The notes under the pieces were generated by a model. The model ran no database searches, was not told where the DNA came from, and was given only the letters and a program-made list of their open reading frames with translations. A stretch of DNA of 64,000 nt from assembly GCA_964188305.1 (NCBI GenBank), contig OZ076886.1, one strand, 5' to 3'. How positions within the stretch are numbered: position 1 is the stretch's first letter; each line of letters begins with the position of its first letter. This stretch comes from Podarcis bocagei. Its lineage: Eukaryota. A program made the position numbers and the translations under genes. Of this stretch, positions 14,900-40,600 are shown piece after piece.

Positions 14900-15199
14900 C
14901 TCTCCTTGCTCATCATAATACAGTATGTACTAATTTGTCCCTTGCTAGCCCCATATACTACCAGGGTCTTTTCCTGCAATTTCACAAGGGCCCTCTCTGG
15001 AAAGATTTTGGAAAGGGTTGCCCAGATCCCGGACTCTAGAGCAGGGCTTGTTGGAGGGCGCGTTTTGAAAGCCACGTTTCATAAAACGTTCCTCCAACAT
15101 CTCCTCGCAAACCTCCAAAGAACGCTGTTTAACTCCCGGGACCTCTTTCCATTTCGGCTCGTATTGCTCAAAGATCTACTTAAGGCACATCAAAAGAAA

Positions 15200-15960
15200 A
15201 CAAACCCGGAAAGAGACAGGTATCGAAAGCCGAAGCGCAGCGGTGCCGGTGGTGGTGGCGGCAACCGCCGTCTCAAGACAAGCTCAGCTTACCTCCGGGA
15301 GCTCGCTCGCTCCTTTCCGGAGGTCTAGCGCCGTCTGGTTCCTCGCCGCTCGCCGCCTTGGCTCGGGCTGCTCAGGAAGTCGCCGGGCGCTCGCTCGCTC
15401 GCTCGCTCAGCAGAGTGCGCAGCAAAACTCGACGGCGCGTCCTACTATAGGACGAAAAAGAAGCTTCCTTTTTTCGCCCAACCGCAAGGCGACCGCGCCG
15501 ATCGCCTCCGCGGCGTCTGCTGCTTGGTTTTTTTCTCGGCGCCGAGGAATCGCAGAGCTGCAACCTTTCGCTGGCCTTCGCCGCCACCTCTCCAGCTCCA
15601 GAAGTCAAGTGGGGACGGCGGCGGCGGCGGATGCAGCCGCTGCCAACAGCTACACTAAGGAGCGCCTGACTCACTCGCCCGGCGCGCTGCGCCCTGCCCA
15701 GTCCGGGAGATGTGCGCGTGGGTGCCTCTGTCCGAGGAGAGAGGTGGCTGCGCTGGGCACCTCTGCCCTGGCACCTCCAACAGGAAGAGGCCTCGGCTAA
15801 ATAAAGAGACGGACACAAACAAGGTTGCTACGAGGAAAGCGGGCAGGTGCTGCCCCGCTCCGAGGGCTTCCCGGCAGCGGGAGCAGCTGAGCCGGCCTCC
15901 CAAGATCTCTTGGCAGCAGAAAAAGATCTCGATCTCGTGGGCACAGCGCATGGCGGCCCC
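15200..15960 (-). promoter_or_regulatory. CpG island, probable PIK3R6 promoter and non-coding first exon(s)
   Basis: Very GC- and CpG-rich, not a recognisable TE. Minus-strand donors GAG|gtaagc (exon end 15293) and CGA|gtgagt (exon end 15675); ETS-like caggaagt/acaggaag and E2F-like ttttcgcc motifs. Confidence 0.7.
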
Positions 15961-17574
15961 ACTCAATCACTCGTCCTCAGGCCCCCTTTCAGCATTTCTG
16001 CGTGTTTCCTGTTCATCAGTTTCCTCCTTCTGAAATGGTAAACTTAAAAAAAAAAACTTTTTAAAAAAAGAAAGAAAGAAGAAGAAGTTGTATGTACTAA
16101 CCAACAACCACAGACGCACATCCTTGTTTTGTGGGGCGCACAGCTGAACCCCAAAGTTCTGTTTTGACACCACTTCCGAGCAACTCCTCAAGCTAGAAAC
16201 CAAAGATGGGCAGTGTGCTAACAAATCTTCATCCCAAAGGCCCATCAGTCAATGGACAATCCATACAACAAACGTGGGCAGGCGAGTTGAGGTTCTTTCA
16301 ACTAAGGTTCCCAGAGCATAGGAGCCAACTCCTAGGAACCTATATCCCTTTGGTCCCCAATAAAATATTTGAGGGAGCTGCCCCCCAAGTTAATTGGCCT
16401 TGTCATTCAAATGGGGGGGGGTGCCACGTCTTGTGATCGATTATGTGGGGCAGGGCTTACCTGCCCCCCCCCAATATTTTATTCAAGTTTGCACCCTACC
16501 AGATAGTGTGGGACTACAATTCCCATTGGCTAAGCTGGCTGGGCATGGTGGGAGTTGTAATCCAACACCACTTGGCGACTCAAGGTTGTTGAACGCAAGT
16601 GTAGTAGGCGTAGGGTGTAGTAAGGACGTATCCTGGGGAGATCTGGTTTCAAATTTCCACTCAGCCATGAAGTTTATTGGGGGACCTGTGCCAGTGGGCA
16701 CCTCTCAGCCTCACCTATCTCGCAAGGTTGTTGTGAATCTAAAAGGGGAACAGAGTACTCTATTCTGAAGAGGGGCATCTGAGCTGTTTTGAAGAGGAGT
16801 GGGGTTTTTAAAAATGTAATAACATTCAATAAAGACAACTGGTCATGATCATGGAGTAGAGAATGATTCTCCAACCTCTGAAGCTGCTCCAGTTTCCAAA
16901 TTCCACCATCTTTGAGGCTGAGAACGCACAATACCTTTAAAGCACATTAGAAAACACCCCCCTCTTCCCAATAATTGGTGTGTTAAGGGTTTTTGGGAAT
17001 TGAGGGTGAATGACAGTGCCCACAATTATTTGAGAAAGAATGTCCTTTGAATAGGCTATGTGTATGAAGCCTGGGTTTAGTGATCCAATCTCCCTCTCAA
17101 GGACCTTTGTGCACAGCTGCTCCTCAGCTCCTCAGCTCCTCAGAGGCTCAGTTCACTCCAGGCTCAGGTCCAAGTGAGGCTTCAGGGTCATCTCTTCTTA
17201 GATGTGCAGCCTTATTCCAGATCATATGTTCAGGGGTCTGTGACAGAATCATCCTGATTTAACAGAGCATGTTGCAAGCACATGGCAAAAGTGCAGGGAC
17301 AACAGGATCCTTATATGGGAAGATCTGAACCCCCATGGGTTTAAATGTTTACCAGAGGCACTTTCCTGCAGATGCAAAGCAGGAAGCCTTTCAAGAGAGT
17401 ACTTGCAGTATCTGATTTCTAAAAGTTAAACAAACTCTGTAACTAAGAACTCATGCATGCAGCTTGATTTATTCCCCCTCCTCCTTCCCAATTCCTTTTC
17501 CTTTTGTGCTGTGCCTTTTGTGCTGTAAACCTCAGGGCAGATCACCTGACATTTATAAGCTGATCTGGGAGAGA

Positions 17575-21266: not shown

Positions 21267-22507
21267 CAATAAGAATAAAAAGTGGAATGAGAAGGTAGGA
21301 GGACCCTGTTCACCTGGATTTTTCCTTTCCACATTCTGCTGACACTAACACACACACAGACACTCCCTGCAACTGGGAGTTCAAAATGCCCCTTTAGTCA
21401 CCACCTCCCACTATCAACAATCAGTTTCACCCATTTGCATTCTCCTCTCAAAAGCAAGCAAGTAAACAGCATGTATTATTATTATAACTTTCATGTAAAA
21501 ATGGCTTAATTCAAGTAAGAAGGCAATTAAAATGGACCTCAGTGCTACCTACATTTCTCAGGTTAACATTTTGTTTCCATCTTCAGGGGGGAAAGGAGTC
21601 CCACTCTATACCAAGGATGGAGAACCTGAGGTCCTCCATATATTGTTGGACTCCAGCACTCATCAAGCCCCAGCCAGCATGGGCAATGACGAGGGAAGGT
21701 GGGAGTTCATCATCATCTAGAGGGCCATCCCTGCTACAAAACAAGAGAAACCATGATAGTTCTTTTCCAGTTCTGTTATGAGGCTTCTTTGCCTCTTTGC
21801 TACAGCAACCGCTCATTCATAAATTCTGCAATTGTGCCTCCTAAAATGATTCCACCTGGGTGTCGCAAATCTGGAGCAACACAAGAGCATATAACACCCT
21901 GCATTCCTCGATACCAGGAATGGGGGAAAAGTACCCATCTGCATGTTGTTGAACTCCCAACTCCCATCATCCTTGACTACTGGCCATACCCAGCTGAAGA
22001 TGGTGGCATAGTCCAGCACCACCTGGAGGAACATGGGCTTCCTATGCCTGGAATAAAAGCATTGCTTGCCAGTAACAGCTCAAAGCCATCCAATTCTGTA
22101 GGAAGTTAGGCAAATAGAACAGGTTTGCTCCAAAGGCTCTCCTGCAGAGAAGCAGGGCATCCACTGACAACCATAGATGGCTATTAGTGTTTTCTTCTCC
22201 GATCTTATTTTTACAGAGAAGCACTCTGGTTCATCTAACATTTGTCATCAAACCATTCTGTTCCATTTGAGAGCACACCCTGCTCCAATCTGCCCTTCAG
22301 TTTCATTCAGTGCATGTTCATTCATTTTGCTCGCTTCCTGCCACTGCCCACCCCCTGCTGGCCACCAAATTCCAAATTCCAGCTCCTGGTGACTCTTAAC
22401 AGACTGAGCACCAGGCAATTTTAACAAAGAAAAACCCAAGGTGCAACATACCGCAATCCCTGCAATTTGTGAATGGCAGCAAAGCATAAGCACAAAAGCT
22501 GCATTCA

Positions 22508-24208
22508 TTTTTTTTTTTTTAATAAATTTTTATTGGTTTTACAGCATTTTTTTAAAAAGAACAAACAAACACAAAACAAAACAAACATACAAAATACTTT
22601 CAAAGATATTTTCATAAACCTCTTTTCTTGGACTTCCCCATACCCCCCCTCTCTGCATCCCAGTGTCCATATTTGAACTAGCAACTCCCAGTTGTTACTT
22701 TCTAATCTCTGTCATCTTAGTCCTCCTTTATTATCTAACCTTGTATCCCTGTACCCTGTTACTTCTAGCAACCACAACATTTTAACATTCGTTGAGTTTG
22801 TAGTAGTCCTTAAGATAGCTCTTAAATTTTTTCCATTCTTCTTCCACCATCTCTTTACGTTGGTCACGGATTCTGCCTGTCATCTCAGCCAGTGTCATAT
22901 AGTCCATCACTTTCATCTGCCATTCTTCCAGAGTAGGTAAATCTTGTGTCTTCCAATACTTTGCGATGAGTATTCTTGCTGCTGTTGTGGCATACATAAA
23001 GAAATTTCTATCTTTCTTTGTCACCAATTGGCCGACAATGCCCAAGAGAAAGGCCTCTGGTTTTTTGGAAAATGTACATTTAAGTACCTTTTTCATTTCA
23101 TTATAGATCATTTCCCAGAAGGCCTTTATCTTCGGGCATGTCCACCAAAGGTGGTAAAAAGTACCTTCAGTCTCTTTACATTTCCAACATTTATTATCGG
23201 GCAAATGATAGATTTTTGCCAGCTTGACTGGGGTCATGTACCACCTGTATACCATTTTCATAATGTTTTCCTTTAAGGCATTACATGCCGTAAATTTGAT
23301 ACCGGTGTTCCATAACCATTCCCAGTCATCTGACATAATGTTATGTCCAACATCCTGCGCCCACTTAATCATAGCAGATTTAACTGTTTCATCCTGTGTG
23401 TTCCATTTCAACAGCAAGTTATACATTCTAGATAAATTCTTAGTATTGGGTTCTAGCAATTCGGTCTCTAGTTTTGATTTCTCCACTTGGAAACCGATTT
23501 TCCTATCCTGTTTAAAAATTTCCATTATTTGGCGATATTGAAACCAATTTTCTACTTTGTGCTTCAATTTCTCCTGACTTTGTAGTTTAACCTTGTCTCC
23601 ATCCTGTTCTAAAATTTCCCAATACTTCGGCCATCCGACCTCCATATTGAGTTTCTTCACTGCTTTAGCCTCCACTGGTGACACCCATCTAGGGGTTTTA
23701 TTTTCCAATAAGTCTTTGTATCTTATCCAGACATTAAATAATGCTTTTCTAACAATGTGATTTTTAAAGGTACTGTTAACCTTGTCATACCAAAGATATG
23801 CATGCCAACCAAAAGCATTATTGAAGCCTTCCAGATCCAAGATGTCTGTATTCTCGAGGAGCATCCATTCTTTCAGCCAGCAAAACGCTGCTGCCTCATA
23901 GTACAATTTTAGGTCCGGCAGGGCAAAACCCCCTCTTTCTTTAGCGTCAGTCAGTATTTTGAATTTAATTCGGGGCTTTTTGCCCTGCCAGACAAATTTC
24001 GAAATGTCTTTGTGCCACCTCTTAAAACATTCCATCTTATCAAGAATCTGCAAGGTCTGAAACAAAAATAACATTCTAGGCAATACATTCATTTTAATTA
24101 CTGCAATTCGGCCTAACATTGACAGTTTCAGATTTGACCATATTTCTAGATCTTTTTTAATCTCTGACCAACATTTTTCATAATTGTCCTTATACAAATT
24201 AACATTCT
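22508..24208 (-). mobile_element. L1-clade LINE, 5'-truncated and young (ORF2 C-terminus, 3' UTR, polyA)
   Basis: Uninterrupted ORF 22782-24197 with post-RT motifs (GRIAVIKMNVLPR, GGFALPDLKLYYEA) and CCHC knuckle CWKC...HLWWTC; AATAAA plus A-tail at 22508-22534; 16-bp TSD acaaaagctgcattca at 22492-22507 and 24251-24266. Confidence 0.95.
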
Positions 24209-24252
24209 TACTCTGGCTTCTCCTCAGATCGTATAAATCTTTCGCCTTTTAC
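24209..24252 (+). pseudogene. U5 snRNA 5' fragment (nt about 2-45, through invariant loop I), retrocopied with the L1
   Basis: tactctggcttctcctcagatcgtataaatctttcgccttttac versus vertebrate U5 as recalled, ATACTCTGGTTTCTCTTCAGATCG(C/T)ATAAATCTTTCGCCTTTTACTAAAG; about 2 mismatches in 44 nt. Confidence 0.9.
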
Positions 24253-25210
24253 AAAAGCTGCATTCAGCTCCAGCTGTAAAAAAAAATACCCCGCCTCTGT
24301 TGTTATGGACTCGTTTGTAGGGCAGTAAGTACCATCATCATCATTTTTTATTTGTATGCCACCTTTCCACAGTTAAAAAAAAATGCTCAAAGGCGGCTTA
24401 CAGCATAACAAGATTTACATAATTACAAAAGTTATAAACAATAAATAAACCACATCAAAAAATACACAACCAAATGGGAAACAATTTCCACATAAATCAA
24501 AATCTAAAACTAAGAATATACCATTCATATCAGAATTTAAAATGGCATAGGTAAAAAACAAAACAAAACAGAGCCCTCTCTGCCCAGCAGCAGTAGCGGC
24601 AGCAGTCCTTTATAGAGCCCATCAGGCCCCGCCCTGGGCAGGACTGTGAGTGGCAGGACTGGGGCCCTCAGGCACTGAGCAGGGGAGTCCTCCTGGGTGG
24701 TAGCCACAGCAGCAGTTCTTATAGGTCTGTCAGGCCCTGCCCTGGGCCAGTCCCATCAACAATGCCCTGTTTAAAAGGGGGAGCAGACAGCTGCAATTCT
24801 CTCGCTCTCAATGAAGTTTTTCAATGGTTTAGCAGAAACTGGCCAGTCAAACCCTCCAACTTCTCTGCATTTCAGATGTGCCCCCATCACGTCCATGCCA
24901 TGTCATCTGCAATCTCTCTCTTTCTCTCTCTTCAGCACTCATGGAGAAACCACAGATGGTAGATATTCTTTCCCCTAAAAAACACCAAACCCTTTCATAT
25001 TCCAGGCGTGTCAAGTGCCTTGTTTCCCAGTTCTGGGAGGACTACCATGCCCTGCTTCTGCTGAAGCCAAACTATCCAGCATGGGCAGGAAGACGCATGC
25101 CATGGGTTTTCCTCTTTCAGTGGAGGTCCATCTCCATTGGATGCCTGGTAGCACATTTGATCAGCACTGGGAGTTGGAAGCCGTTCACTCACTCCATCCT
25201 TTCTGACTCC

Positions 25211-25358: not shown

Positions 25359-28300
25359 CTGTGAATACAGCAGGGCATTGAGATTGAAGCAGAAGTTGAT
25401 TTATTGAGGAGACACAGACACATTTAAGTGCATTATTAACTCTGAGCAAAGCTGCAGCACACTGTTCAGTCAATAGGTGGGCGTACTGGTACAGCTGCCT
25501 AGCAGAAATACATAGGCCCCTGTACCTGTAGATTGACTATGCAGTGAGGTGGACTCTGCTGCTTGGAAAGAGCAGATATACAAAGAGTATATCTGGATGG
25601 ATTTTATCCTAGATTGTAAGTCCTGATCCCCATTGCAACCCAGATGTTTGGCCTGCTCAAGTACACAAAGTGAATGGCACCCAGCTTGGATCCTGAAGAT
25701 CACTGCAGAAGTCTCCTGTGAGAGAGTTTTCAATTGTGGACTAATCCGCATAATCAGGAGTGAAGGGTCACTGTTGGATAAAGTAGACCAAGCTTAAGGC
25801 TATCCACAAAGAATATTCAACACTACATACTTTTTAATGGACTTAATCTAGAGGGAGACGACTGACAGGCTGCCCCCAAACCAAATGACCGTAAAGGGCT
25901 ACTTGGGTCACCCTGAACAATCTAAGCAGCTGAGGATTAGAGAATATGTTCCCAAAACTAACTAAACCTTCTTACAGGATCTGCTGGAACTTGATGGGAA
26001 TGAAGAATTTGCTCCAACCCCCTTTTCACCACAGGGACACGGGTGGCGTCAGTCGTGACTGACTCTGGGGTTGTGGCACTCATCTCACTTTATTGGTCGA
26101 GGGAGCTGGCGTACAGCTTCCGGGTCATGTGGCCAGCATGACTAAGCTGCTACTGGCAACCAGAGCAGCACATGGAAATGCTGTTTACCTTCCCGCCGGA
26201 GCGGTACCTATTTATCTAGGTTGGCAGGAGCACGGACCGAGCAACGGGAGCTCACCCCGTTGCGGGGATTCTAACCGCCGACCTTCTGATTGGCAAGTCC
26301 TAGGCTCTGTGGTTTAACCCACAGCGCCACCCGGGTCCCTAAATTCTTAAATTAGATATACCCTAATGTGAAGGTCCAGTATTCATCTTTGGTCCTGAGG
26401 CTTTGGAACTAGAGTGGCTTACCTGTAAATCGGGATGGACCAAGGGGGGCAATGCAGTTTCCCTATCCACCCACCCCCATCAAAGAGCTCAATTACAACT
26501 ATGGGGAAATGTCCTGATGTCCTGTCCCCCCCCCATGTTTTCCCTACCTGGTGACACTCTGCAGAATCTTCTTCTCATCCTGGTCCAGGCACATAGCAAA
26601 GGAACAGTTCACCCCAATAATCTGGACCTTGTCCACTTTCATCTGAGACACACTGATTTGCTGCAGAAGAAAAATCAGTCAAATTATTGGCGGTTGTTGC
26701 AGCAGCAGCAGGGAAATTCACCAAGGCTAAAAGCATTCTTGCCCACCCAACAACACCATGAGATGAAAATAAGACCCACAGGTCAGGCTACCTGGTTGAA
26801 ACTCTTCTTGGACTTGGAACTCTGCCTCTTGATTACCTCTGTTGCAGTGAGAGTTAAGCATTCGGTTTTTGAATCTGGAAGAAACAGGAAAGGAGCTATA
26901 TTAGTATATGGAACTTTGATAACAACACCTTCCTCACGGTAAAGTCAATTATGGTCCCTCCAGACATCCTTTTTATTGTGCATTCATGATTATTTGTGTT
27001 CTGATTGTATCAGGATGGTTATACAGGATCGTGCTTTAAATACTCTCTGTGCCTGCAGAGGTTTCAGGGCAGAAATGTTTCCAACCTGTGCATGTTCCAT
27101 AGCTACCTACTGAAAGCCTGTCACTTTTCATACCACACATGTCCTGGAGGTGGGTGATGTCTCACTTTTGTTGCACTTTGTGCAAGAGTGCCCCTCCAGA
27201 CGTCAATAATGCAGCAGTGTGAGAAATTGATATGAAAGCTAAGAGCTAAATGGCACCCTAAACCTAGGTTATGGGCACAACAATTGAATGTCTAGGCATG
27301 CTTCTGTGTAACAAGAATACAAAGCTGAAAATTAATGAACTGCAGCTAAAATATTATGTTCATTTTTCACATGGTCTAGTCCTTCCCCTGCCTGCCCACC
27401 CCCCTAACATTCTTAAGAGGGTCTCTTCTCCAGTCTTCAGAGAGTAGCTGGAAGTGGGGAGGCAGAAAAAGGTCCTCCTTTCCTTCCACTCTGCAGATTT
27501 AATCTGAAATCTCAGGCATGGTACCGTGCCCAGAGATCAGAAACTGCATGCGCTAATGAAATTTATTGTCACAAAATGTGCCTATAACAATGGGAGTTAC
27601 TGTGATGCAGTAACACTGGGAAATAACAACTAGTAGAGCTGAATGATGTGTGGATGGTCCAGCATCAACATGCCACTAATGCACTATTACTGCACTAGTA
27701 ACACATTGCAGAATGCACCCTCAAAAAAGCACCAGTCTGGAGGGACCCTTAAGAGCCCATTATAAAAGAAGCCACACATAGTTACATTTTATGGACAGCA
27801 GGGCTGCTCTGCAAAAGTTCTGAAGCTTCAGGAAGAAGTCTATGAAGGGTGCAGTCCAGTGGCTACAGTTTCTGCAGCACCTCGATACACCCCTCTCCTC
27901 ATTCCCTTGACTCCAAAGCTCATCATATTTTCATCTCCCATCCCTCCTCCTCCTCCTCCTCCTCCTCCTCCACCACCACCACCACCACCACAGTATCAAA
28001 TAGCAATGTGTTAGTTGTCTTAACCTCAATCCCTTTCCCTGGCACATAATTAGGGGGCAAGGCTGCACGCAGCAGACACTTGCCCGCACTTTTCTGCAGT
28101 GCCTCCCCATTTCACACCTTACAAAATCCAAGAACCAATCTGCGATGTTGTGCTAGATGGTTCGTAAAAATGTATTTCAGTGAGGAAACCCCACTCAGTC
28201 TATGCAAGCAATTAAGAGTATTTCAAATCGAAAGCCAGTTGCTTTAGTGGGCTAACAACAGATTTTCTTTAAAAGAGCTGGACCAGAGTCAACCCTGAGT

Positions 28301-31300
28301 TTCATGCAAAAGGTGAGCCAGAGTCCTTGCAGCATTGGCCAGAAAGTTTGTGACACCTTGTGGCCAAGTGTATTATTGCATGACTCTAGCAGAATAGTTT
28401 TGTTTTTAAAAAGCAAAAGGGGAGGGATGAAAAAGGAAGTTGCAGCATTTGGTCAACAGAAATGCAACAGGCAGAAGCAGTAATCCAGGTGGGTGGTGGT
28501 TTGGAGTCTGGCCTACATTCCTGTGCCAACTGTCCCACTATCTGTAAGAGATTTTGAAATCCCCAAGGGGCTAACTACACATGCAACAGAGCCAGATTGT
28601 GTGGATTTTGTGTGCTGTAGCCTTTTTCTTGCCTGGCAGAACTGGCATAACTCCATTCCAAATGTGCATGTCAGCAGCTTCCCTTCAATATGCTTCAGCA
28701 AAACAAGGAACCATCAGAACAAGATGACAGCATATATATATTTATATATAAATACACAAACGTGACAAAACAGCTTGCACACACACACACTGAGAAGAGC
28801 ATGCTCATCTACATCAGGAGCTGCTTCTGTTGCACAGGGCTTCTCCAAATCACCTGGCCCATTCTCCACCTAAGTGCTGGGAGAAGGTAGCAAAAAGTCA
28901 TGTTCACCCTAGCATAAAGACTCACCAAGCTCTTCTTGTTTCTTACAGGTCTTGCTGAGATTGATGGTCGTGCAGACTTTCTGAATGTCATTCCAGCGGC
29001 TCCGTCCACTGACTGCTCTCTGGAGGGATCACACAGCACCCCAGTTATTCTCTAGTCTGTGGAAGCATGCAAGAAAGGGGGGGCAACTGATGCTCAAAGC
29101 CCCAGCCCCATCTAATTAAAACATTCTCCAAAAGTGCTTCCAGAGTGCAAGTCTTTCGCTCACATGTGGCCTATTCATTCCCTGCATTTTGCCTCTCTGC
29201 AGCTGGTCCTCTCCTTTCCAGCCCAGCTAAAGGCCTAGGCTTGAATATTAGAGGCAAACATCAGCAATAGGAGCAAGCAGCAGCCGCTACCTCTGAATTA
29301 CCTTGCTGTAGGCGATCTGTAGTGTTAGTGGGATTGCTTCTCTGTCTCCATCTATGCCCAGCCGCTTGCAACCTGGACCTGCACCCAAAAAAAGGGGAAA
29401 GAGAGGAGGTAGTACAGTGGCACCTCGCAAGACGAATGCCTCGCAAGACGGAAAACTCACAAGACGAAAGGGTTTTTGGTTTTTTGAGTTGCTTCGCAAG
29501 ACAAATTTCCCTATGGGCTTGCTTCACAAGACGGAAACGTCTTGCAAGTTTGTTTCCTTTTTCTTAAAACCGTTAATACAGTTGCGACTTGACTTCGAGG
29601 AGCAACTCATAGCACGCGGTGTGGTAGCCTTTTTTGAGGTTTTTGAAGACTTTGGTGATTTTTGAAGCTTTTCCAAAACTTTTCCAAAACCGTGCTTCGC
29701 AAGACGAAAAAATCGCAAGACAAAAAAACTCGCGGAATGAATTAATTTCGTCTTGCGAGGCACCACTGTATTTTGTTACAGACAAGGGCTATGTAGTGCA
29801 GAGTCTCTTGTAATGTATCCCAGGACATTATACTCAAGAGCAAAGGGGAAGACAGGCACAACATAAGAGCAAGTTCTTCAGCAGCAGAACATGGAAGGCT
29901 TCTCAACAGAACAAACAGATGTGCAAATAAAAAAACTGAAAAGCTGCCCCAGTCATCAGCATTGCCTCTTGAGGCAGGCTGCATGTCCTAGGCTCGCCAC
30001 TCCATACTCTGCTGCCACATTCCCCAGTTCAGCTGGAAGTAACTTTGCAGGATTGATCAACCTACTCTACATAGGTGTCTGAGACAGGAAAAGAACACAC
30101 CCCATCCTGTGAAGATATAAAGAAAACCAGGCTCTCCACTCTGTTGCATGTTGCAGAGGGGGAGGAGAAGGAGCGGGTGATCCTCTCGTTTCTGCTGCTG
30201 TCCACAGCTTTGTTAACTTTCCCCAGCAGGAGGAGATGGCAGCAGAGGCTACCAGATAGACAGATGAGTCCAGTACAGGCAACAGGCCTCAAGCAGAGGA
30301 GGAGAGGCAAGTCCAGCGTTGGGAGTTCCCAGTAGCATGCATGTCTGTCAGTACAACTGCAAAAGGTCCTCTTGTGTAATGGTTAAGAATGGTGGACTCG
30401 TAATCTGGTGAACCGGGTTTGCTTCCCCGCTCCTCCACATGCAGCTGCTGGGTGACCTTGGGCGATTCACACTTCTCTGAATTCACACTACTACTACAGT
30501 GTTATGTCTGTATTCACCAAGAGTCTCAAAGGTGCCTAATCCTAGCAGTGTATTAATAGGAGAATACCCATCCCAGCAGATCATCATGCAGTCCAAATTC
30601 TCAATTTGCTGCTTTTTCTATGGGTTAGGAATTTGGTTTCCTCCTGCCCACCTCTGTTCTCCCCTTCACTTTCTAGGGGAATAGCTGTGTTAGTTTCTTG
30701 CAGACTAAACAGCACAAAATGATGTCACAGAGAACCTGCTTTCAACATTGATCAGATGCATACCTGAGGCTTTGATGGCCCGTGTGGCTGCTGAGTGGCC
30801 CAGCTCTAGGGAGTGGATGAAGATCTCTGTCTTCGTCTGTCCTCCAATGAAGGTGAGCTGTGGAATTGAGGAAGGAAGAGGTCAATCCAGCATTTCTTAG
30901 ACACCCTATTCAGCTCAGCCCTTCTTTAGGTCAAACATTTTCTAAAAACAACCCAGTAGCTTAGGGGCAAAAAATGGGATTCTAATGAACAGAGTACCAA
31001 TACACAACTTTTAAAACACAGACCAGGTCCTTTCAAAGGCATCACTGAAAAGAAGAACACAAGGACCCAGAGTTATATGCTGCTGAGGAAGTCACTCTAT
31101 GCGGCATATCAAATAGGCCTGGAGGAAGGAAGCCAGCATCAGTGTGTGTGTGTGGAGGCCACACAGAGTTGGCTTCAAGAGGAGCCACAAGCAGAAGATT
31201 GTGTCAGGCAGCTGGGTCGTATTTACACAGTGACTTCATTCAGATTGTGGTTCAGTCATCAGACACTTACAAAGAGTATCAGACACTTATGTCCACCCAC

Positions 31301-31619
31301 TTTTTCATTTCTCATTTCACGGTAAACCAGAGTTTGTTATCTTGTCTGAACTGGGTAAAATAAGATTATGACAAACCATCGCTTGCCTTAAACTACAACA
31401 GGAAGCCTCAGTTTGAACTGGGTTTCCAGTCCTGGATTGGAAATGAGCTGTGATTTGCCTAAAGATCACATGAGCCTGACAACCATACATCTGGGTCCTC
31501 TCCAAGAGCAGACAATTGTTCTCTTATGGGACCCATATCAATTTCCTATGGAGGGGTTTCCAATTTCCCTGTCATTAAGGCACACACAACATTTTTAGTA
31601 GACAGGAGTACGTGTGCGT

Positions 31620-31654
<35 letters not shown>

Positions 31655-34600
31655 AACTGATAGTGGCCACCACATTGCAAGTTATCTATATTTGACAAAT
31701 GTGACTGTTACAGAGTGAAACCAATGGCTCAGATCATGGAGGCCCAGCCTGGCCAAACACAAGGCACGGGACACGCAATTGCTTCTCATCTCTCCAGCAA
31801 ATATGAAGTGAGTCTTTAGCTGCTTGGACAATCCCATGGGGCTTTAGGACCAAACTCACCTCTACCTGATAGACCTGCAGCAACACTGGGCGGGTAGCAA
31901 AACGACAGTAATAAAGGATCATGTCAGCAAGGATGGGGAGCTGCTCTGCTGTATCTTCTAGGGGCTCACCCTCAGGTTTGGCAGATTGCTATGGAAAGAG
32001 CAAAAAGTGAACAAACCCCTCATTCACACACACACAGGTCTAGGCCAAGGATGCCCTGGTGATTCAATTGCAGCACCTACTCTAGTAACTCTTTCTTCAG
32101 CAACATAAGCAACTTCCTTATCCCAAGTCAGACCATTGGTCTCTCTAGCTCAGCATTGTCTAAACTCACTAGCACTGGTTTTCCAGGGTTTCAGATAGAC
32201 ATCTCTCCCTGGGACTTGCTGAGGACTGAACCCATGACTTTCTGCATGCAAAGCAGGTGTTCTACCACTGAGCTCTGGCATCCTCCAAGAGCAAGAGAGG
32301 AGTCAGCATTTGAGCACCCCGTGGCTATATGCCTGAAAATGTGCACCGCTTGGTCGCAACAATTCTGTTAAAAACAGAATCGCCAACCACTGCAGAAAAA
32401 ATGAGAATAGCATAAGCATTCTCAGCAGCTGCCTTCTCTTCAGTGCTTTGCTTTGAAGAAGGACTCCTTCTTCAGGCAGATACATGTAGATGGGGAGAGT
32501 GCTCCATACAGTCCCATAGGAACCCAGCACCAATAGCAATAGCTGGTGAGTTGGTGGGTGGTGATGGCAACATCAGTGAGTGGGCAGCTAGTTGGGATAG
32601 CTGAGGAGATGGCAGCGGTGATGGCAATCTGTAGCCTTGAGCATGGCCCTAGACCCACACTGACCAGCACCTAAGCTCCAAGGATGGGGGAGATGACTGA
32701 GTGTAAGCTCATAGGACACTGCTACACCACGCGGCCTGGATCTTACAAAAAGAGAGCACTGCTGTTTTAGAGTATAAGCAGTATAGAGTTCAGGACCTAC
32801 CTGGCATAGAACATTTGTGGGAAGGTTCATTAGCCCAAGAACATTGCGCTCGTACCATGGATCCAGCATACCAATGTAGACCGAGATATCATTTGTGCTG
32901 CTCTCCAACCCTGCCAAACTGGGATCCTGAAAATCAAAGAAAGAAGCATAGCCCATTAGCTAGCTTGCTGCTATCAATGGCCAGGTCTTACCAGAATCGT
33001 AGCAAGAGGATGCCCAAATTGCTCCCAACATCCAAAGAGATCAAGGTTGAAATTCCTGCTGTGAAAGGTTCTTGATTCCTAGGGTGGAGGCACACAAGCC
33101 AGGCTACCCCCACTATCTCAGATAATGCAAGAAGGTTCTTTCCAAAATAAGGCACCCAACAAGCACCAGTAATAGCTAAAAGTGAAGATATTGTGTGTCC
33201 TGGTATAATGGAACATGCTCCCTGGAAGCCTGCCATTCCCCAAATGCATACCATTGATCCACAGGAACGAGAATGTGGATCTCCTGGAGAAGGAGGAGGG
33301 TAGGTCAGTGCAGATGAGGTAGAGCTACTCCTCTTCACGGGGACATAGTAAAACTGCAGTTTGAAGTACCGAGTTAACCAGGGGCAGCTGCTTTCCTGAG
33401 ATCTGCAGCGAATGAATAGGACACATGGAAAACAGTAAGATGGAGACCACCTTGCTACAGTCTTCAGTCCACAGCCCTAACTAATCCCAACAAGCCTCCC
33501 TATTTGTCCAAGTCACACCCACCTGCCCTACGCCTGGCCACCAGGGCTTACAGAATGCTGTGCCTTTGAACACATGGTTTGATCTGAAACCCAGCAGGCA
33601 AAACTGGTTCACCTGACTTCATTGCAATTTCAGCTGATTGAAACATGGGTGGTCATGACTACCTATCAAACTCAGCCCGTGGGGAGGGGATATGGATCCA
33701 GACAGACCCAGTTCCCCACCCCTGTGCTACAGTCTGCTAGCATCCATCAAAAGGTATAAAAGAAGGGTACAGTACTGTAGTAGTTAGGCATACTGCAGAG
33801 CTCAGAACCCATTTCAGAGACCATTTTCATGGCATATTGGTGGCATGAAAGGGTAAGATAGGATATGAATTGATGGTGTGATGTGAAACTCCAGAGGGGA
33901 CCTTATCACCCACCCCCTTGGGCCAAAGGTAGGTAAGTGGGTTGTTAAGAGGAAATCCCTCCCGTGTCTGCCTGCTGATCCCTTAACAGGGACTCAGCAA
34001 GTAGAGGAGATCACCAGCAGCCAGGAGGCTGTTCTGCCACTCACTTAAGATTGCTGTAAGCCCGGGCCACTTTCCCAGAGATGCGGTCAGAGCCAAACAC
34101 GACCACCCGCAGCGTCGAGACCTTGGTGTCCTCGTCACAGCTCAGGAAGGGCCTGCGCTGGACACAGGCATTCTGTGGCACCCGGGTCTGGAAAAGGGTG
34201 GCACTCAGTGCATGCTGCGGCAGAGAGAGTGCACGCCGTGAGCGTGTGGGGATGCGCTCTTTGACCACGGGGTTGTAGAGGCTCTCGGCTCGGCGCAGCG
34301 GCAGTGAGAGCGACGCCACCTCAGAAACGTCCCGCAATTCCCTGCCCAGGATGAGCTGGCTCTTGCTCTTGAACAGCTTGATTATCCTGTTGCTCAGGCG
34401 ATACCGGTGTCTGGGAGATGCCTTCTCCTCCTTTGGATCCAGGCGGCCCATCGGCTCAAGGGAGCTCTCGTCACTGTCCTCCACATAACCACTGTCCGTG
34501 TAGTCCTTCAGGCTGGAGACAAAAGTCTTCAAGGAGTTTTTAGAGGCCAACAAGAGCTCAGAGTCTTTGGAAAGGGTGGAGAGGACTGGTGCCTGCGAGT

Positions 34601-37600
34601 CATGGGGACTGACTTCCGACAATACGGAATACACAGATTCCTTGGAGACAGCAGCCAGGGAAGTCAACAGGGAAGTTCTTTCTGGACAGTAGCCATCAGC
34701 TTCTTCTTCCTCCTCCTCCTCCTCATCTTCCAAAACCACAGGCTTTGGGAAGTGCCCCTCTTTGTCTAGTACCTCATTCAAGATGTCTGCAAAAGGGACA
34801 GAGGTGCAAAATTAGGAATAGAAAAGGAGAAAATGTATACAGTTTTAAACTTGAGATTGCTTTTATATGCTCTGCTCTAGTAGCACCCACTGAAAGATCA
34901 GCCTTTAGATTTAGAGATGTAGTAGGGTACAAGGGTCCAACTAGAGCACAGCTGATGTTGCCAGGATTATCACCGCTTGGGAAAAAGAAAAATACACAAC
35001 TGTGAATGGGAAGCCATGATGGGGCCAAGGAACATCTCCTGGAATCAAGCCAAACTTGCTTACATGTTTCCAAGCTTACCAAAGTTATCCTTATCCCATC
35101 TGTAGGTGTAACACCGGGCAACAGGGATGGGGATCAGGTGGAGTTTACAAGGCTGGACTTCCCCTAAAGAGACAAGGAACCAGAGGTTAGGAGCGCAACA
35201 TGCTCCTTCAGGATGGTATGGAACTGACCACATCCAAACATGCCCAACCACACCCCAAGGAAAAACTGCCCTAATAATTTCCCACCTGTGATTTCAGGCA
35301 GCCCGGCTGCCTTTGCAATCTCCAGCAAAGCAGATTCCAGCTGCTCCTTAGCCATGGAAAGGTCATTGCTGGTGGCAGCTGCCAGCTCCTGAGCTTCTGT
35401 GGTGCTGGCAAATATCTCCATGAGCTTTTCTAAAGGTTTCAGCTGGAGAGAGAGAACAGTCAGCAGAAGATCTATCTGGTATCTTAGCATCCATTTCACA
35501 CACTACACAATATACAACAGGTGGGAGGATGGGAGGACAGAGTTTAACCATGATGCATGGGCTGTGCTGCCCTTTCTGAGCAAGGAACAGGATCACACAG
35601 TTTAGGCAGGAGGATTTAAGTTTAAGTAAATATCCTGCAGTGCTGCAAGGACACACACACACAGAAAAAAATTGCTGTGGTTTTTAGGGTAAAACCAATC
35701 TACTTCCTGAACTAAATAGTCAACCTGCAAACAATGTGAGGCAAGTTATTCAGTATCCTTCCTTCTCTCACCCTTTGACCCAAGCCACTTTCTTAGCTAT
35801 GCCAGTTTTGATTTATTTGCCATCAAAACGTCTGCTTCTTCAAGACTGAAAACTCCTGGAACTTAAGGATCGCTCAAGTAATCATTCCATAGAGCTATGC
35901 ATCCAAGGCCCCAGGCCACACAGCTTTCCCTACCTTGAGAACTTCACGTAGTCTTGGCAGGTCACATTTGGTCCCAAAGTTAGCTTGGTAGATGTGCTCC
36001 AGGAGTGTCACCAGTACCGTGTGCTGGGAGTGCTCTGCCGTGCTCAACTTTTCAGCGACCGAGAGAAACTCCCCATCAACCTCTGAAGGGTTCAGCAACA
36101 GGACTGTTCTGTGGGGGTGGGGGATGGGGAATAGGTAAGAGAGAAGAGGCAATAGGACGGCAAGCTGTTAACAGCCCAACTCAGAAATGGAGAGACTCAA
36201 CTTTTATCTGTGCCTGGGGCCACAGATGACTTTCATAATCTATGAGCTATTGGAGGGCAGGAGAAAAAATGCAGAGGCTCCATACTTCAATTAATTCACA
36301 TCAAAGCACCAGCAGATGGCACAGTTTTTCTGTTTTTCTACACCCACTCCCCTTCTATGAACCAGCATGCTTAGAAAACATAGCCTGGCATTGTTGAGAT
36401 AGCTAGCAGTTATAAGACTGCAGAGAAATAATCATAATCTACAACTAGCCCTCCCTATCCATGAACAACTGATAACCATAACTATATAATCTCTGATGTG
36501 GTGGTGGACTGAAAAGGGGCAGTTATAGACTTGTCTGCACCTCAGCAGACACACATCAATTTAGGATCAGACACAGGTCACTTCAGAGTCTGGGCTGATC
36601 CTGTACATATCCATTATGATCCCACCATCCACATTCCTTTCCCAAACTGTACCTATTTGAGGGGAACAGAGACCTGCTAACAACAAACCAAAATTCCCAT
36701 GATTCTTTAGGGGAAGCCATGGCTGTTTAAGTGGCAGGATTCTGCTAGTGCAGTTGGGACCTACGATCTGTCAGGTCTCAAGCCTGCCTACAGTCACCCT
36801 ACCACCACTGGTCTGGGAGCCATATCTTTTGTCTGGGGGGTTTCACAGCTACTCAGTAGTGATGGAAAGTCACTCTGCATACTCAGGGGACTATTTCATT
36901 TATCCTTCCTTCATATAGTCCAGGAATTTCCTCTGTTACCTAAAATAAATGCTGGGGCTGAGCCCTGGTACAAGCCAAGCCCTGAGCAACAGGAGGCCCT
37001 GGGAAATTTAAAGGAGGACAATATCCCCAAAAGCTCCTTCCCTTTCCTAACCCACAGAAAGCAGTCATGATTCCTGCATGATACTTACACAATGGAACTC
37101 TCACAGCTCTTTGCAGACAGACCCTGCTCTGCCCTAACCAGCCTTTGAAATGAAATCCCTGTTAAAAGAAAGGGAAGGTTGTTAAAACACAGTGGTGGCA
37201 TCCACTTCTCACTGAGACCTCACAGAACTGGTGGGCTCAGGTGGAAGAGACAGGTGAACCCCATGGGGGCAGGGGTGAATGGAAGAAGGAATTCAGGTTG
37301 AATACCACTCTTCACCATTATCTTCTTGGATAGGGTCTAACTCCCAAACAGTTTGACACACAGTGGGTTTTTTTACCAACATTGATTTCCCCAAATGTGT
37401 AGAACTATGCAGAAGAAAGAAAGCATATACAATTTGCTTGCAGCAGTGAAACAACCCATCAGGCCAATTGCCTCTCAGCAAATCTGTTGGACTGAAGGAT
37501 CCACCATGCAAGGTGAGCAAAAAGCTTAGAGCAGCTTTTCAAATTTCTCGGCCTTGGAGAAAGATAGCTTCAAGTCAGCCCACCAATGGAATTGGAAAGT

Positions 37601-40600
37601 TTTGCATTCCCCTGTTTAAGAGTGTTCAGCTACTGCTTCCTTTCAATAATTCACCACTGCGGAATTCTGTCTCTAGCCATTGCACATTGAGAAAGTGCTA
37701 CCTACGCGATGTCCGCTACTCCAACAGTTCTTCCATGTTTCACAAATATTCTACCCATTTCCAGTGCAGCTTCTCCGCCCTTGAAACAGTCCAGCTGAAG
37801 GACATGCACCCCACAGAGCAATTCTTACTTACCCACTCAAAAACTCTCTATTGCGTGTGGTCACATGGTTTGCAAGAAAGCAATAAGATAGTAACTAGGC
37901 CCATTTCACACTGGCAACATACGTTTGAAGTGCATGGTGTCTCCGGGGTTTACACCTCACAGAGCTACAATTCCCAACACCCTTAACAAAGTACAGTTCC
38001 CAGGGTTTCTTTGGAAGGAAACTATGTGCTTTAAATGCATGGTGTGGATGAGGCACATGTTTTTTAAGGCACCAGTAGCTACTGGGCCCCTGGATATTTG
38101 CACCCTCGGGCATTTGACAGATAAATCAGATTAATGATTGGAGGCACAGCATAATGAATAAGCATACTGAACACTCTCAAACTTCAGCTTTCCTAAGAAC
38201 TCCAATAGTTCAATTTAAACTGTGATGATTTACTGAAAGTCTTATAGCAGAAGCAAGGAATTGGCAGCCTTAATGAGGAAATGAAAAAGAGACACCCTGT
38301 ATTTCACCTCTAATGGCATTAATAGGCTCTTCCAAGGTAGATCTGACACTGAATCTGTTGCAGGTTGAAACACAATGCTGGGCACCCAGGCACTTTCTAA
38401 GAAAGCCTCTCCATTTAATTGGGGAAACTGCTTAATGAGGAGTAACAGAAGGCTGGCTGCCAGCATGGCCTAATTAAGAAGTTTCCACTGCATAAACTTT
38501 AAGAACCCTTATGAGTGCTGATAATCAACAGGAGCAGAGTCTAAGCTCATTAAGCAGAGGCTGCACCATAGTTCACGAGCAGAGACCAGAGGTCCCAGTG
38601 TATCATATGGAAATTATCTGACACAGTTACCCATTCAAAGTCCAAGTCTACCTGAATGGATTCTCTGTTGTTACTGGAGCATTTCGATGAGCCATTCATC
38701 CCCTTTCAAGTGAAGCTGGAGGGTAGGAGAGCAATGGAGTGCAACCACATCCATTGTGTCAGGCAAATGACTTTGCACAAGAAACATTCTATCCTTGGGT
38801 GGAAACCATGGGCTTATAAAAGGTCAGAGTACTGAAAGGAGCTCTCCAGCCTCTGGTTCAAATCCTACTTCAGAAGGGGGAACCTTAGACCAGTGTTTCC
38901 CAACCTTTTTTGGGCAAAGGCACACTTGTTTGATGAAAAAAATCTCGAGGCACACCACCATTACAGCCCCGTGACGTCAGCGCGCAGCGTCACGCCGGGA
39001 GGGACGCACGAAAGTGTAAGTTTCAATTTTTTCCCTCCCCCTTGCCGGGGAACATCCAAGCTTTGGGGGTGGGGGGGGAGGAGGCAGCAAAGCGAGGCAG
39101 GAAGGAGAGCGCGGCTTGGCTGGGTGAGCTTTGGCAGGGGCAGGGAATGAGAGCCGCGAGGCGGGCGCTGCGGACGGAGGCGCTGCCCGCCGAGCTCGCA
39201 GGCAGCCAGGCAGGCAGACGGCGAGAGCCCCGCGCTGGGCGGCCTCTCCTCGCCGCCGCCACCGCCCCGCCTCTCGCCGCCCAACTCACCCGCCTCCCTC
39301 CAGGCAACATCTCGCGGCACACCAGGCAACATCTCGCGGCACACTAGTGTGCCGCGGAACAGTGGTTGGGAAACACTGCCTTAGACAAACCACTGTACTC
39401 CCATTCTTAATCCCTACAGGAAGATACTACCCTTGCTGGAATGTGTCCTCGAACTGAGATACTGCATGGCTGAAATGTAGCCTATTGTCCAAAGGTTGAC
39501 ACTGCATCCCTTGTTTCACACTTCGTTTCTTCTTTCTTTTCACCTCTGGCCCTGCCTACTTTTACCAGCACTGGTATGTGGCCCTTGGAAGGTTGCCATT
39601 TAGGGAATTTTGCCCTTGGGCAGAAAAACATTCCCCACCCCTGATATAAAATGCTAAAAGAAGAGTGGCACCTTCCAGATTAAGAGATTTATAGTAGCAC
39701 ATACTTTTGTGTGCTGGGGCTTTATTTCAGATGTGGACAGTCCATCAGCCCACCTGGATTTCCCTCGGTGGGTTAAAGTGCTTTCTTCTCTGAAATTAAT
39801 ATACCATATTTTTCGCCCTGTAGGACGCACCGGCCCATAGGACGCCCCTGGAATATTTTTGGGGGGGGGGGAATAAATGGGAAAAAATTTATTCCCCCCC
39901 CACCCAGGCACGGGGCTGGGGGCGGGTGAAGCCCGAGCATCCCCCGACCCCAGCCCCCAGAACGGGAGCCAGAGCGATGCCGAAGCTGTGCACAGCTTCG
40001 GCATCGCTCCGGGGGGTTGCGCGGAGCTGCGCCGAGCCTGGGAGCGCAGGCAGCTCTGCGCAACCTTTGGGAGCCCTGCGAGAAGCCGGGCTCCCTAAGG
40101 CTGCACAGAGCTTTCTGAAGCCTGGAGAGGGGTCGGTGCGCACCGACCCCTATCGCTCACCAGGCTTCAGCAAAAGCCTGTATTCGCTCCATAGGATGCA
40201 CACACATTTCCCCTTCATTTTTGGAGGGGAAAAAGTGCGTCCTATAGGGTGAAAAACACGGTAAATGGCTAAACAAGTCTGCCTTGGATGCTGAAATTCC
40301 TGTATTGCAGGGAGTTGAACTAGATGACCCCTGGGGTCTCTTCCAGCTCTACAATTCTATGATTCTATTAACCATTATTTGATGGGCCTTGTGTAAATAA
40401 TCCATCCAATATGGTCTATAATGCATCTTGTTTCAGAACCAATACTGTTGATATGCAAGCACTGAGTAAGCTTCTTTCATCAGGATACAGCCTTAATGCT
40501 TTTGCCCTATGTGCTGGCACCATTTGCACACCATGCAGCATGCCAGCAGGCTTATGGTGTGGGATGAAGCCACCACACTCATATAGGCATGTGCATGAAA

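Follow-up and report, generated by a model that had tools for sequence, protein, structure and literature searches.

An inverted U5 snRNA/L1 chimera within one target-site duplication in the lizard Podarcis bocagei, consistent with twin priming on U5

Chimeras in which U6 small nuclear RNA (snRNA) is joined to the long interspersed element (LINE) L1 are said to arise by template switching or RNA ligation, as reportedly worked out by Buzdin in 2002-2003 and by Garcia-Perez in 2007, and tailless, that is, 3'-truncated, retropseudogenes of snRNAs, 5S ribosomal RNA (rRNA) and transfer RNA (tRNA) were reportedly described by Schmitz in 2004. Here we analyze an insertion in a 64,000-nucleotide stretch of Podarcis bocagei DNA (GenBank assembly GCA_964188305.1, contig OZ076886.1; the whole stretch is called the window below), in which a fragment of U5 snRNA and a 5'-truncated L1 lie head to head inside a single target-site duplication (TSD). 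The closest described counterparts are four human U5 copies that are joined in inverted orientation to L1 or SVA within one TSD (Doucet et al. 2015, Mol Biol Evol, PMC4476161). These human copies are 3'-truncated at nucleotides (nt) 36, 48, 43 and 46, all in the exon-contacting loop of U5. Their U5 is complementary to the insertion site, the L1-side nick fits the endonuclease consensus, and twin priming on U5 was proposed as their origin (Fig. 1, c' and d', of that study). Inverted cases of U1 and U2 and one of U6 were added in the same work (PMC4476161). Among human U5/L1 chimeras, all U5 parts are 3'-truncated and 80% are antisense, and the same pattern is seen in 5S rRNA and tRNA halves (Law and Burns 2025, bioRxiv 10.1101/2025.02.02.635956). 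As for lizards, Anolis was screened for U6 only, which gave U6 chimeras with L1, L2 and RTE as well as 25 3'-truncated U6 copies (PMC4476161). Tailless retropseudogenes of U2 and 5S were found in the anole as the only non-mammal, and a similarly relaxed L1 was predicted there (Noll et al. 2015, PMC5322556).

The insert in P. bocagei was 1743 bp long and lay between two perfect 16-bp repeats, ACAAAAGCTGCATTCA, at 22492-22507 and 24251-24266. A search for this repeat found just these two copies in the 64-kb window, even with one mismatch allowed (chance expectation, 0.01). Read along the plus strand, the order was the gcataagc flank, the left TSD copy, a run of 13 T, 1.7 kb of reverse-complemented L1, the 44 nt of U5, the right TSD copy and the gctccagc flank. 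The two parts are in opposite orientation, with U5 on the plus and L1 on the minus strand; they abut directly, and both lie within the one TSD. According to a scan of the window, this insertion was the only one with a poly(A)-plus-TSD signature. The insertion is young, because its reading frame is intact (no stop in 476 codons), its TSD is perfect and its tail is pure.

The segment at 24209-24252 was compared with U5 both as a family model and base by base. With Infernal, the stretch 24207-24262 gave a 3'-truncated match to the Rfam U5 family (RF00020) over model positions 1-55 of 117, with 26.7 bits and an expectation value (E) of 0.0057, and this was the only family found. When 701 nt were searched with Rfam, only loop I and its stem registered as U5, with 18.7 bits. 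Neither score reached the gathering threshold of 40, in keeping with a fragment that holds 40% of U5 and is not a U5 gene. At gathering thresholds, Rfam gave no match in the whole window, and no U5 gene was found in it. For the comparison base by base, we used a mammalian reference that we take to be U5, to judge by its Rfam match. It is printed unlabelled in a concatenated set of snRNAs (bioRxiv 10.1101/2021.08.01.454689). The segment matched nt 2-45 of this reference at 42 of 44 positions, against a chance expectation of about 4e-18 for the window. Identity collapsed after nt 50: nt 46-50 matched at four of five positions, and nt 51-65 at 2 of 15, as random sequence would. The copied part comprises the 5' strand of stem I and the invariant loop I, CGCCUUUUAC, which was exact at 24243-24252. 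At both mismatches, nt 10 and nt 16 in the 5' strand of stem I, C stands in place of U. The mammalian fold pairs nt 10 and nt 16 with A67 and A61, and lacertid U5 genes may carry a compensating G at the partner positions.

The junction between the two parts was examined at both the protein and the DNA level. In a protein alignment, all relatives that span the breakpoint read ...KVKYLG(V/I)xLT(S/A)KN(V/I)(N/D)L(F/Y)... The window frame upstream of KNVNLY reads KAKDLYDLRRSQS; KYLG is absent, and the reverse complement of U5 stands in its place. Five Podarcis L1 copies from P. lilfordi and P. raffonei loci (one each in loci L001, L002 and L004 and two in L005) lost homology to the window at 24206-24210 and then continued upstream with KYLG-coding sequence; the breakpoint is placed here against copies that are 80-89% identical, not against the source subfamily. 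An origin of the 44 nt from within L1 was ruled out, since the segment is absent at the breakpoint in all five copies. The two closest copies (L004, 89% identity over 211 nt; L001, 85%) read ACA TCT AAG AAT at the breakpoint, and the minus strand of the window reads CCAGAG TA AGAATG, with no filler bases. Because L004 and L001 have this sequence, the TA at 24209-24210 can be assigned either to L1 (..TC TA AG..) or to U5 nt 2-3. It would represent a 2-nt microhomology at the head-to-head junction of two complementary DNAs (cDNAs). The first-pass annotation, made from the letters alone, had claimed that U5 and L1 lie inside one 16-bp TSD, that the segment is U5, that KYLG is missing upstream of KNVNLYKDNY and that the 44 nt are not L1. 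All of these claims were borne out, that on U5 with a family score below the gathering threshold, and the 2-nt 'ta' microhomology that it had put forward for checking was confirmed by the L004 and L001 sequences.

The L1 part carried an open frame on the minus strand from 24212 to 22785, with 476 codons without a stop (SKNVNLYKDNY...KLNEC) and a stop codon at 22784-22782. It corresponds to the C-terminal region of a 5'-truncated ORF2 (22782-24208, minus strand; human ORF2p residues ~775-1238) and includes a CWKC..H....C motif. A search of the PDB aligned the fragment to residues 779-1238 of the 1275 in human LINE-1 ORF2p (E, 4e-31), which was the only kind of solved protein matched. The frame is followed by a 3' untranslated region (UTR) at 22521-22781, which is 262 nt long when counted from 22520. 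A minus-strand AATAAA is found at 22534-22529, nine bases before the A13 tail (22508-22520, T13 on the plus strand), and the UTR terminates in AATAAAAATTTATT, the same ending as that of the Podarcis lilfordi L1 copy in L001. Among 1.8 billion representative proteins, the fragment had 8113 relatives, and an APE-type endonuclease and a reverse transcriptase (RT) domain were present in the longer ones. The closest relatives in a word-indexed search were all pieces of L1 ORF2 from P. muralis, P. lilfordi and P. raffonei, at 80-89% amino acid identity. Pfam had no family for the 476-residue fragment, and when 22400-24400 was compared with the whole window by self-BLAST, no further copy of this L1 family came up. 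Judged by its sequence, the element is a 5'-truncated LINE of the L1 clade, because it combines ORF2p homology, the Cys-rich motif, relatives with APE and RT domains, the A13 tail and the 16-bp TSD. Within its ORF2 region, a near-palindrome was noted at 23906-23997 (ggcagggcaaaa...ttttgccctgcc), with weak mir-3158-like matches on both strands (E, 0.46 and 4.2; far under the gathering score); a hairpin that arose in L1 by chance is the most likely reading. Rfam matches to mir-3158, mir-471 and snoZ188 in 23900-24600 (E, 0.46-9.3) were set aside as chance.

The two ends of the target differ in how they relate to the inserted RNAs. The left TSD copy (22492-22507) ends on the plus strand in ..CATTCA-3'OH, the likely primer of the L1 cDNA. 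On the other side, U5 was truncated at nt 43-45, inside loop I, and the right TSD copy (24251-24266) begins at U5 nt 44. Its first seven nt, ACAAAAG, matched U5 nt 44-50 (ACUAAAG) at six of seven positions, for which the chance in a fixed register is about 1e-3. The 3' end of the minus-strand target, ..CTTTTGT, can pair with U5 nt 50-44, and its two terminal bases are matched.

We propose, with a probability of roughly 0.6, that the whole insert came from one L1 retrotransposition event in which two cDNAs were made from two staggered nicks, that of L1 first and that of U5 second. The plus strand would have been nicked at 5'-CATTCA/GCTCC, and the resulting 3' end would have primed the L1 mRNA from its poly(A) tail to give the 1.7 kb of L1 cDNA, a step that can be read from the structure of the insert. 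The minus strand would then have been nicked 16 bp away, where its ..CTTTTGT 3' end could anneal to U5 nt 44-50, on the 3' side of loop I, and ORF2p would have copied U5 back to nt 2-3, starting at nt 43-45. Finally, the ends of the two cDNAs may have been joined head to head at the TA microhomology, with the 16-bp TSD produced by gap filling. That there was one event is argued from the single perfect 16-bp TSD, which encloses both parts, and an origin from a single event with two primers, whichever nick came first, is very probable. A single event is supported further by the complete 3' end of L1, with its AATAAA and A13, and by the start of U5 at nt 2 and its stop at nt 45; the target match to U5 nt 44-50 sits exactly at the U5 end. 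L1 is placed first as in the published human model, and twin priming is favored because the structure is the same as that of the four human U5/L1 or U5/SVA chimeras with target complementarity (PMC4476161). Template switching and RNA ligation were ruled out, since both yield chimeras in the same orientation and U5 is inverted here. The match of ACAAAAG to U5 44-50 at six of seven positions had already been pointed out in the first-pass annotation and was confirmed against the mammalian U5 reference; its suggestion of twin priming on U5 is supported, as the best available explanation, by the inverted U5, the shared TSD and the target complementarity.

Some observations weigh against this scheme. 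The L1-side nick, TTCA/GC, is a poor fit to TTTT/AA, a mammalian consensus that may not be that of the lacertid enzyme. A more endonuclease-like site, CTTTT/GT, stands on the minus strand at the U5 end, two bases into the TSD. Stem Ic takes up nt 47-50 in native U5 and would have to open locally for annealing, and a single locus stands behind the proposal. The U5-side site would fit a reverse order: the minus strand nicked first at 5'-CTTTT/GT, with U5 taken by template choice, and the L1 mRNA copied afterwards from the plus-strand nick. A TTTT/purine site exists on the U5 side alone, and the TSD would in that case be 14 bp, with the extra 'AC' coming from A44-C45 of U5. In tailless U5 copies, too, the start is an endonuclease nick that pairs with the run of purines following U46, and their TSDs are over-called by one or two bases (PMC4476161). 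We nonetheless consider the reverse order unlikely, though worth keeping in view. ORF2p binds the L1 mRNA in cis, and the first nick normally goes to this RNA; an order with L1 first also agrees with each of the seven inverted snRNA/L1 cases in human (PMC4476161). The reverse order also needs a 1 in 16 coincidence, namely that the 'AC' of U5 equals the 'AC' of the target. The T-richness of the U5-side site is partly forced by pairing with the AAAG of U5, and selection for annealing to U5 would produce it anyway. Finally, related lacertid L1 insertions also used loose sites. In three of them with clear TSDs of 13-17 bp (L001:1974-5342, L004:5418-11464 and L005:4799-5425, the only usable ones from five Podarcis loci), the first-nick sites were CCTT/GG, TTTG/AT and GTAA/AA. 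This hints that the L1 endonuclease of lacertids depends less strictly on TTTT/AA than that of human L1, in a sample far too small for a logo. As a separate observation, Podarcis lilfordi (L004:13129-15011, OX395127.1) has a poly(A) insertion of 1.86 kb with a TSD of 12 bp. Its 5' part includes ~105 nt of L1 ORF2 inverted relative to the tail, and this lacertid insertion may represent an L1 inversion by classical twin priming.

Explanations without two primers in one event fared worse. A pre-formed antisense-U5::L1 3' chimera, as RNA or DNA, might have been retrotransposed or duplicated into the site. We found no direct support for it, and it is improbable: it gives no reason for a 5' end at U5 nt 45 or for a target that matches U5 nt 46-50, the L1 in it is 5'-truncated and lacks a promoter, and no second copy was found in the window. 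Tailless snRNA fragments are known in lizard genomes (PMC5322556), which would suit two separate events, with L1 landing next to a U5 fragment that was already there, or with a tailless retrocopy of U5 arriving later exactly at the 5' end of L1. However, an older fragment would have to be outside the L1 TSD, and U5 is inside it. The older U5 pseudogene that the first-pass annotation had named as the alternative would be excluded by this geometry. A later U5 insertion would carry a TSD of its own, and none flanks 24209-24252; moreover, the left TSD copy is preceded by the unrelated gcataagc. Two events are therefore very improbable. It is hardly credible that the 44 nt are something other than U5 (part of L1, a chance match or another repeat) or that the junction is an assembly artefact. 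The Rfam score, 26.7 bits against a gathering threshold of 40, speaks for a segment other than U5, but the identity with U5 starts at nt 2, reaches 42 of 44 and includes the invariant loop I, and the five L1 copies lack the segment at the breakpoint. An artefact is hard to reconcile with junctions and a TSD that are exact.

The insert lies near PIK3R5, which encodes the PI3K-gamma adapter p101 and whose exons were found on the minus strand at 26789-34823. A 246-residue exon at 34044-34781 matched Pfam PF10486 (E, 1e-49), and further exons were located near 33.3, 32.8, 31.9, 30.8, 29.3, 28.9 and 26.8 kb. The L1 has the same orientation as PIK3R5. Since the insert is ~2.5 kb beyond the last exon found, it would be in a late PIK3R5 intron, in the 3' UTR or just downstream. 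Elsewhere in the window, GC-rich islands were seen at 15001-16000 (GC fraction, 0.61) and 39001-40000 (0.57) against a background of ~0.44. They contain overlapping open reading frames on both strands, with no Pfam match, and are possibly CpG-island promoters or first exons.

On the reading that we prefer, one event with L1 primed first and U5 second, a lacertid L1 is capable of forming the inverted U5/L1 chimera known from human L1, with the same loop I breakpoint region. The locus supports the view of Noll et al. (2015, PMC5322556) that the L1 machinery is relaxed in lizards and therians alike and can be primed on abundant nuclear RNAs by short stretches of complementarity, and it suggests that loop I of U5 is an intrinsic hotspot independent of the host. 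Were the reverse order true, the tailless-snRNA pathway and L1 insertion could be coupled in one event, and the locus would again mean that squamate L1 shares the relaxed trans-priming behavior of therian L1. The insertion is a clean, young example, with an intact frame, a perfect TSD and microhomologies readable at both junctions, and could seed a census in squamates. It reveals no new mechanism. The capture of U5 in trans by twin priming had been put forward in the first-pass annotation as something not known to be described outside mammals. Of this, the squamate part stood, as we found no inverted U5/L1 chimera in a squamate in the literature, most subscription journals being outside the scope of the search. 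In PMC5389967 and PMC13295347, there was no mention of lizard L1 target sites or snRNA chimeras. For human, both the inverted U5/L1 chimera truncated in loop I and the twin-priming model had already been published (PMC4476161), so what is new is limited to the host lineage, and this may be the first inverted U5/L1 chimera to be noted in a squamate.

Compared with the other known classes, the locus shares some features with each. Like U6/L1 template-switch chimeras, it has an snRNA joined to a 5'-truncated LINE inside one TSD, but those chimeras are in the same orientation and usually contain full-length snRNA, whereas U5 here is inverted and cut at nt 45. Tailless snRNA, 5S and tRNA retropseudogenes also show internal priming on a single-stranded purine-rich stretch by target complementarity and keep the 5' end of the RNA; they stand alone in their own TSD, however, and U5 here shares its TSD with L1. 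Twin priming on one L1 mRNA likewise yields two cDNAs from two target ends within one TSD, with microhomology both at the primer site and where the two cDNAs meet, the difference being that a separate RNA, U5 snRNA, served here as the second template in place of an internal stretch of that mRNA. The likeness is to the human inverted U5/L1 and U5/SVA chimeras (the 'twin' type, Group IV; PMC4476161), in which a U5 truncated in loop I (nt 36, 48, 43 and 46 in human; nt 43-45 here) is joined in opposite orientation to a 5'-truncated poly(A) retrotransposon, within one TSD and at a U5-complementary target. The lizard case differs in its host and its lacertid L1 family, and also in an L1-side nick that departs from TTTT/AA, which all the human cases fit. 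Apart from this nick consensus, the P. bocagei locus matches the human class in every structural feature that could be tested.

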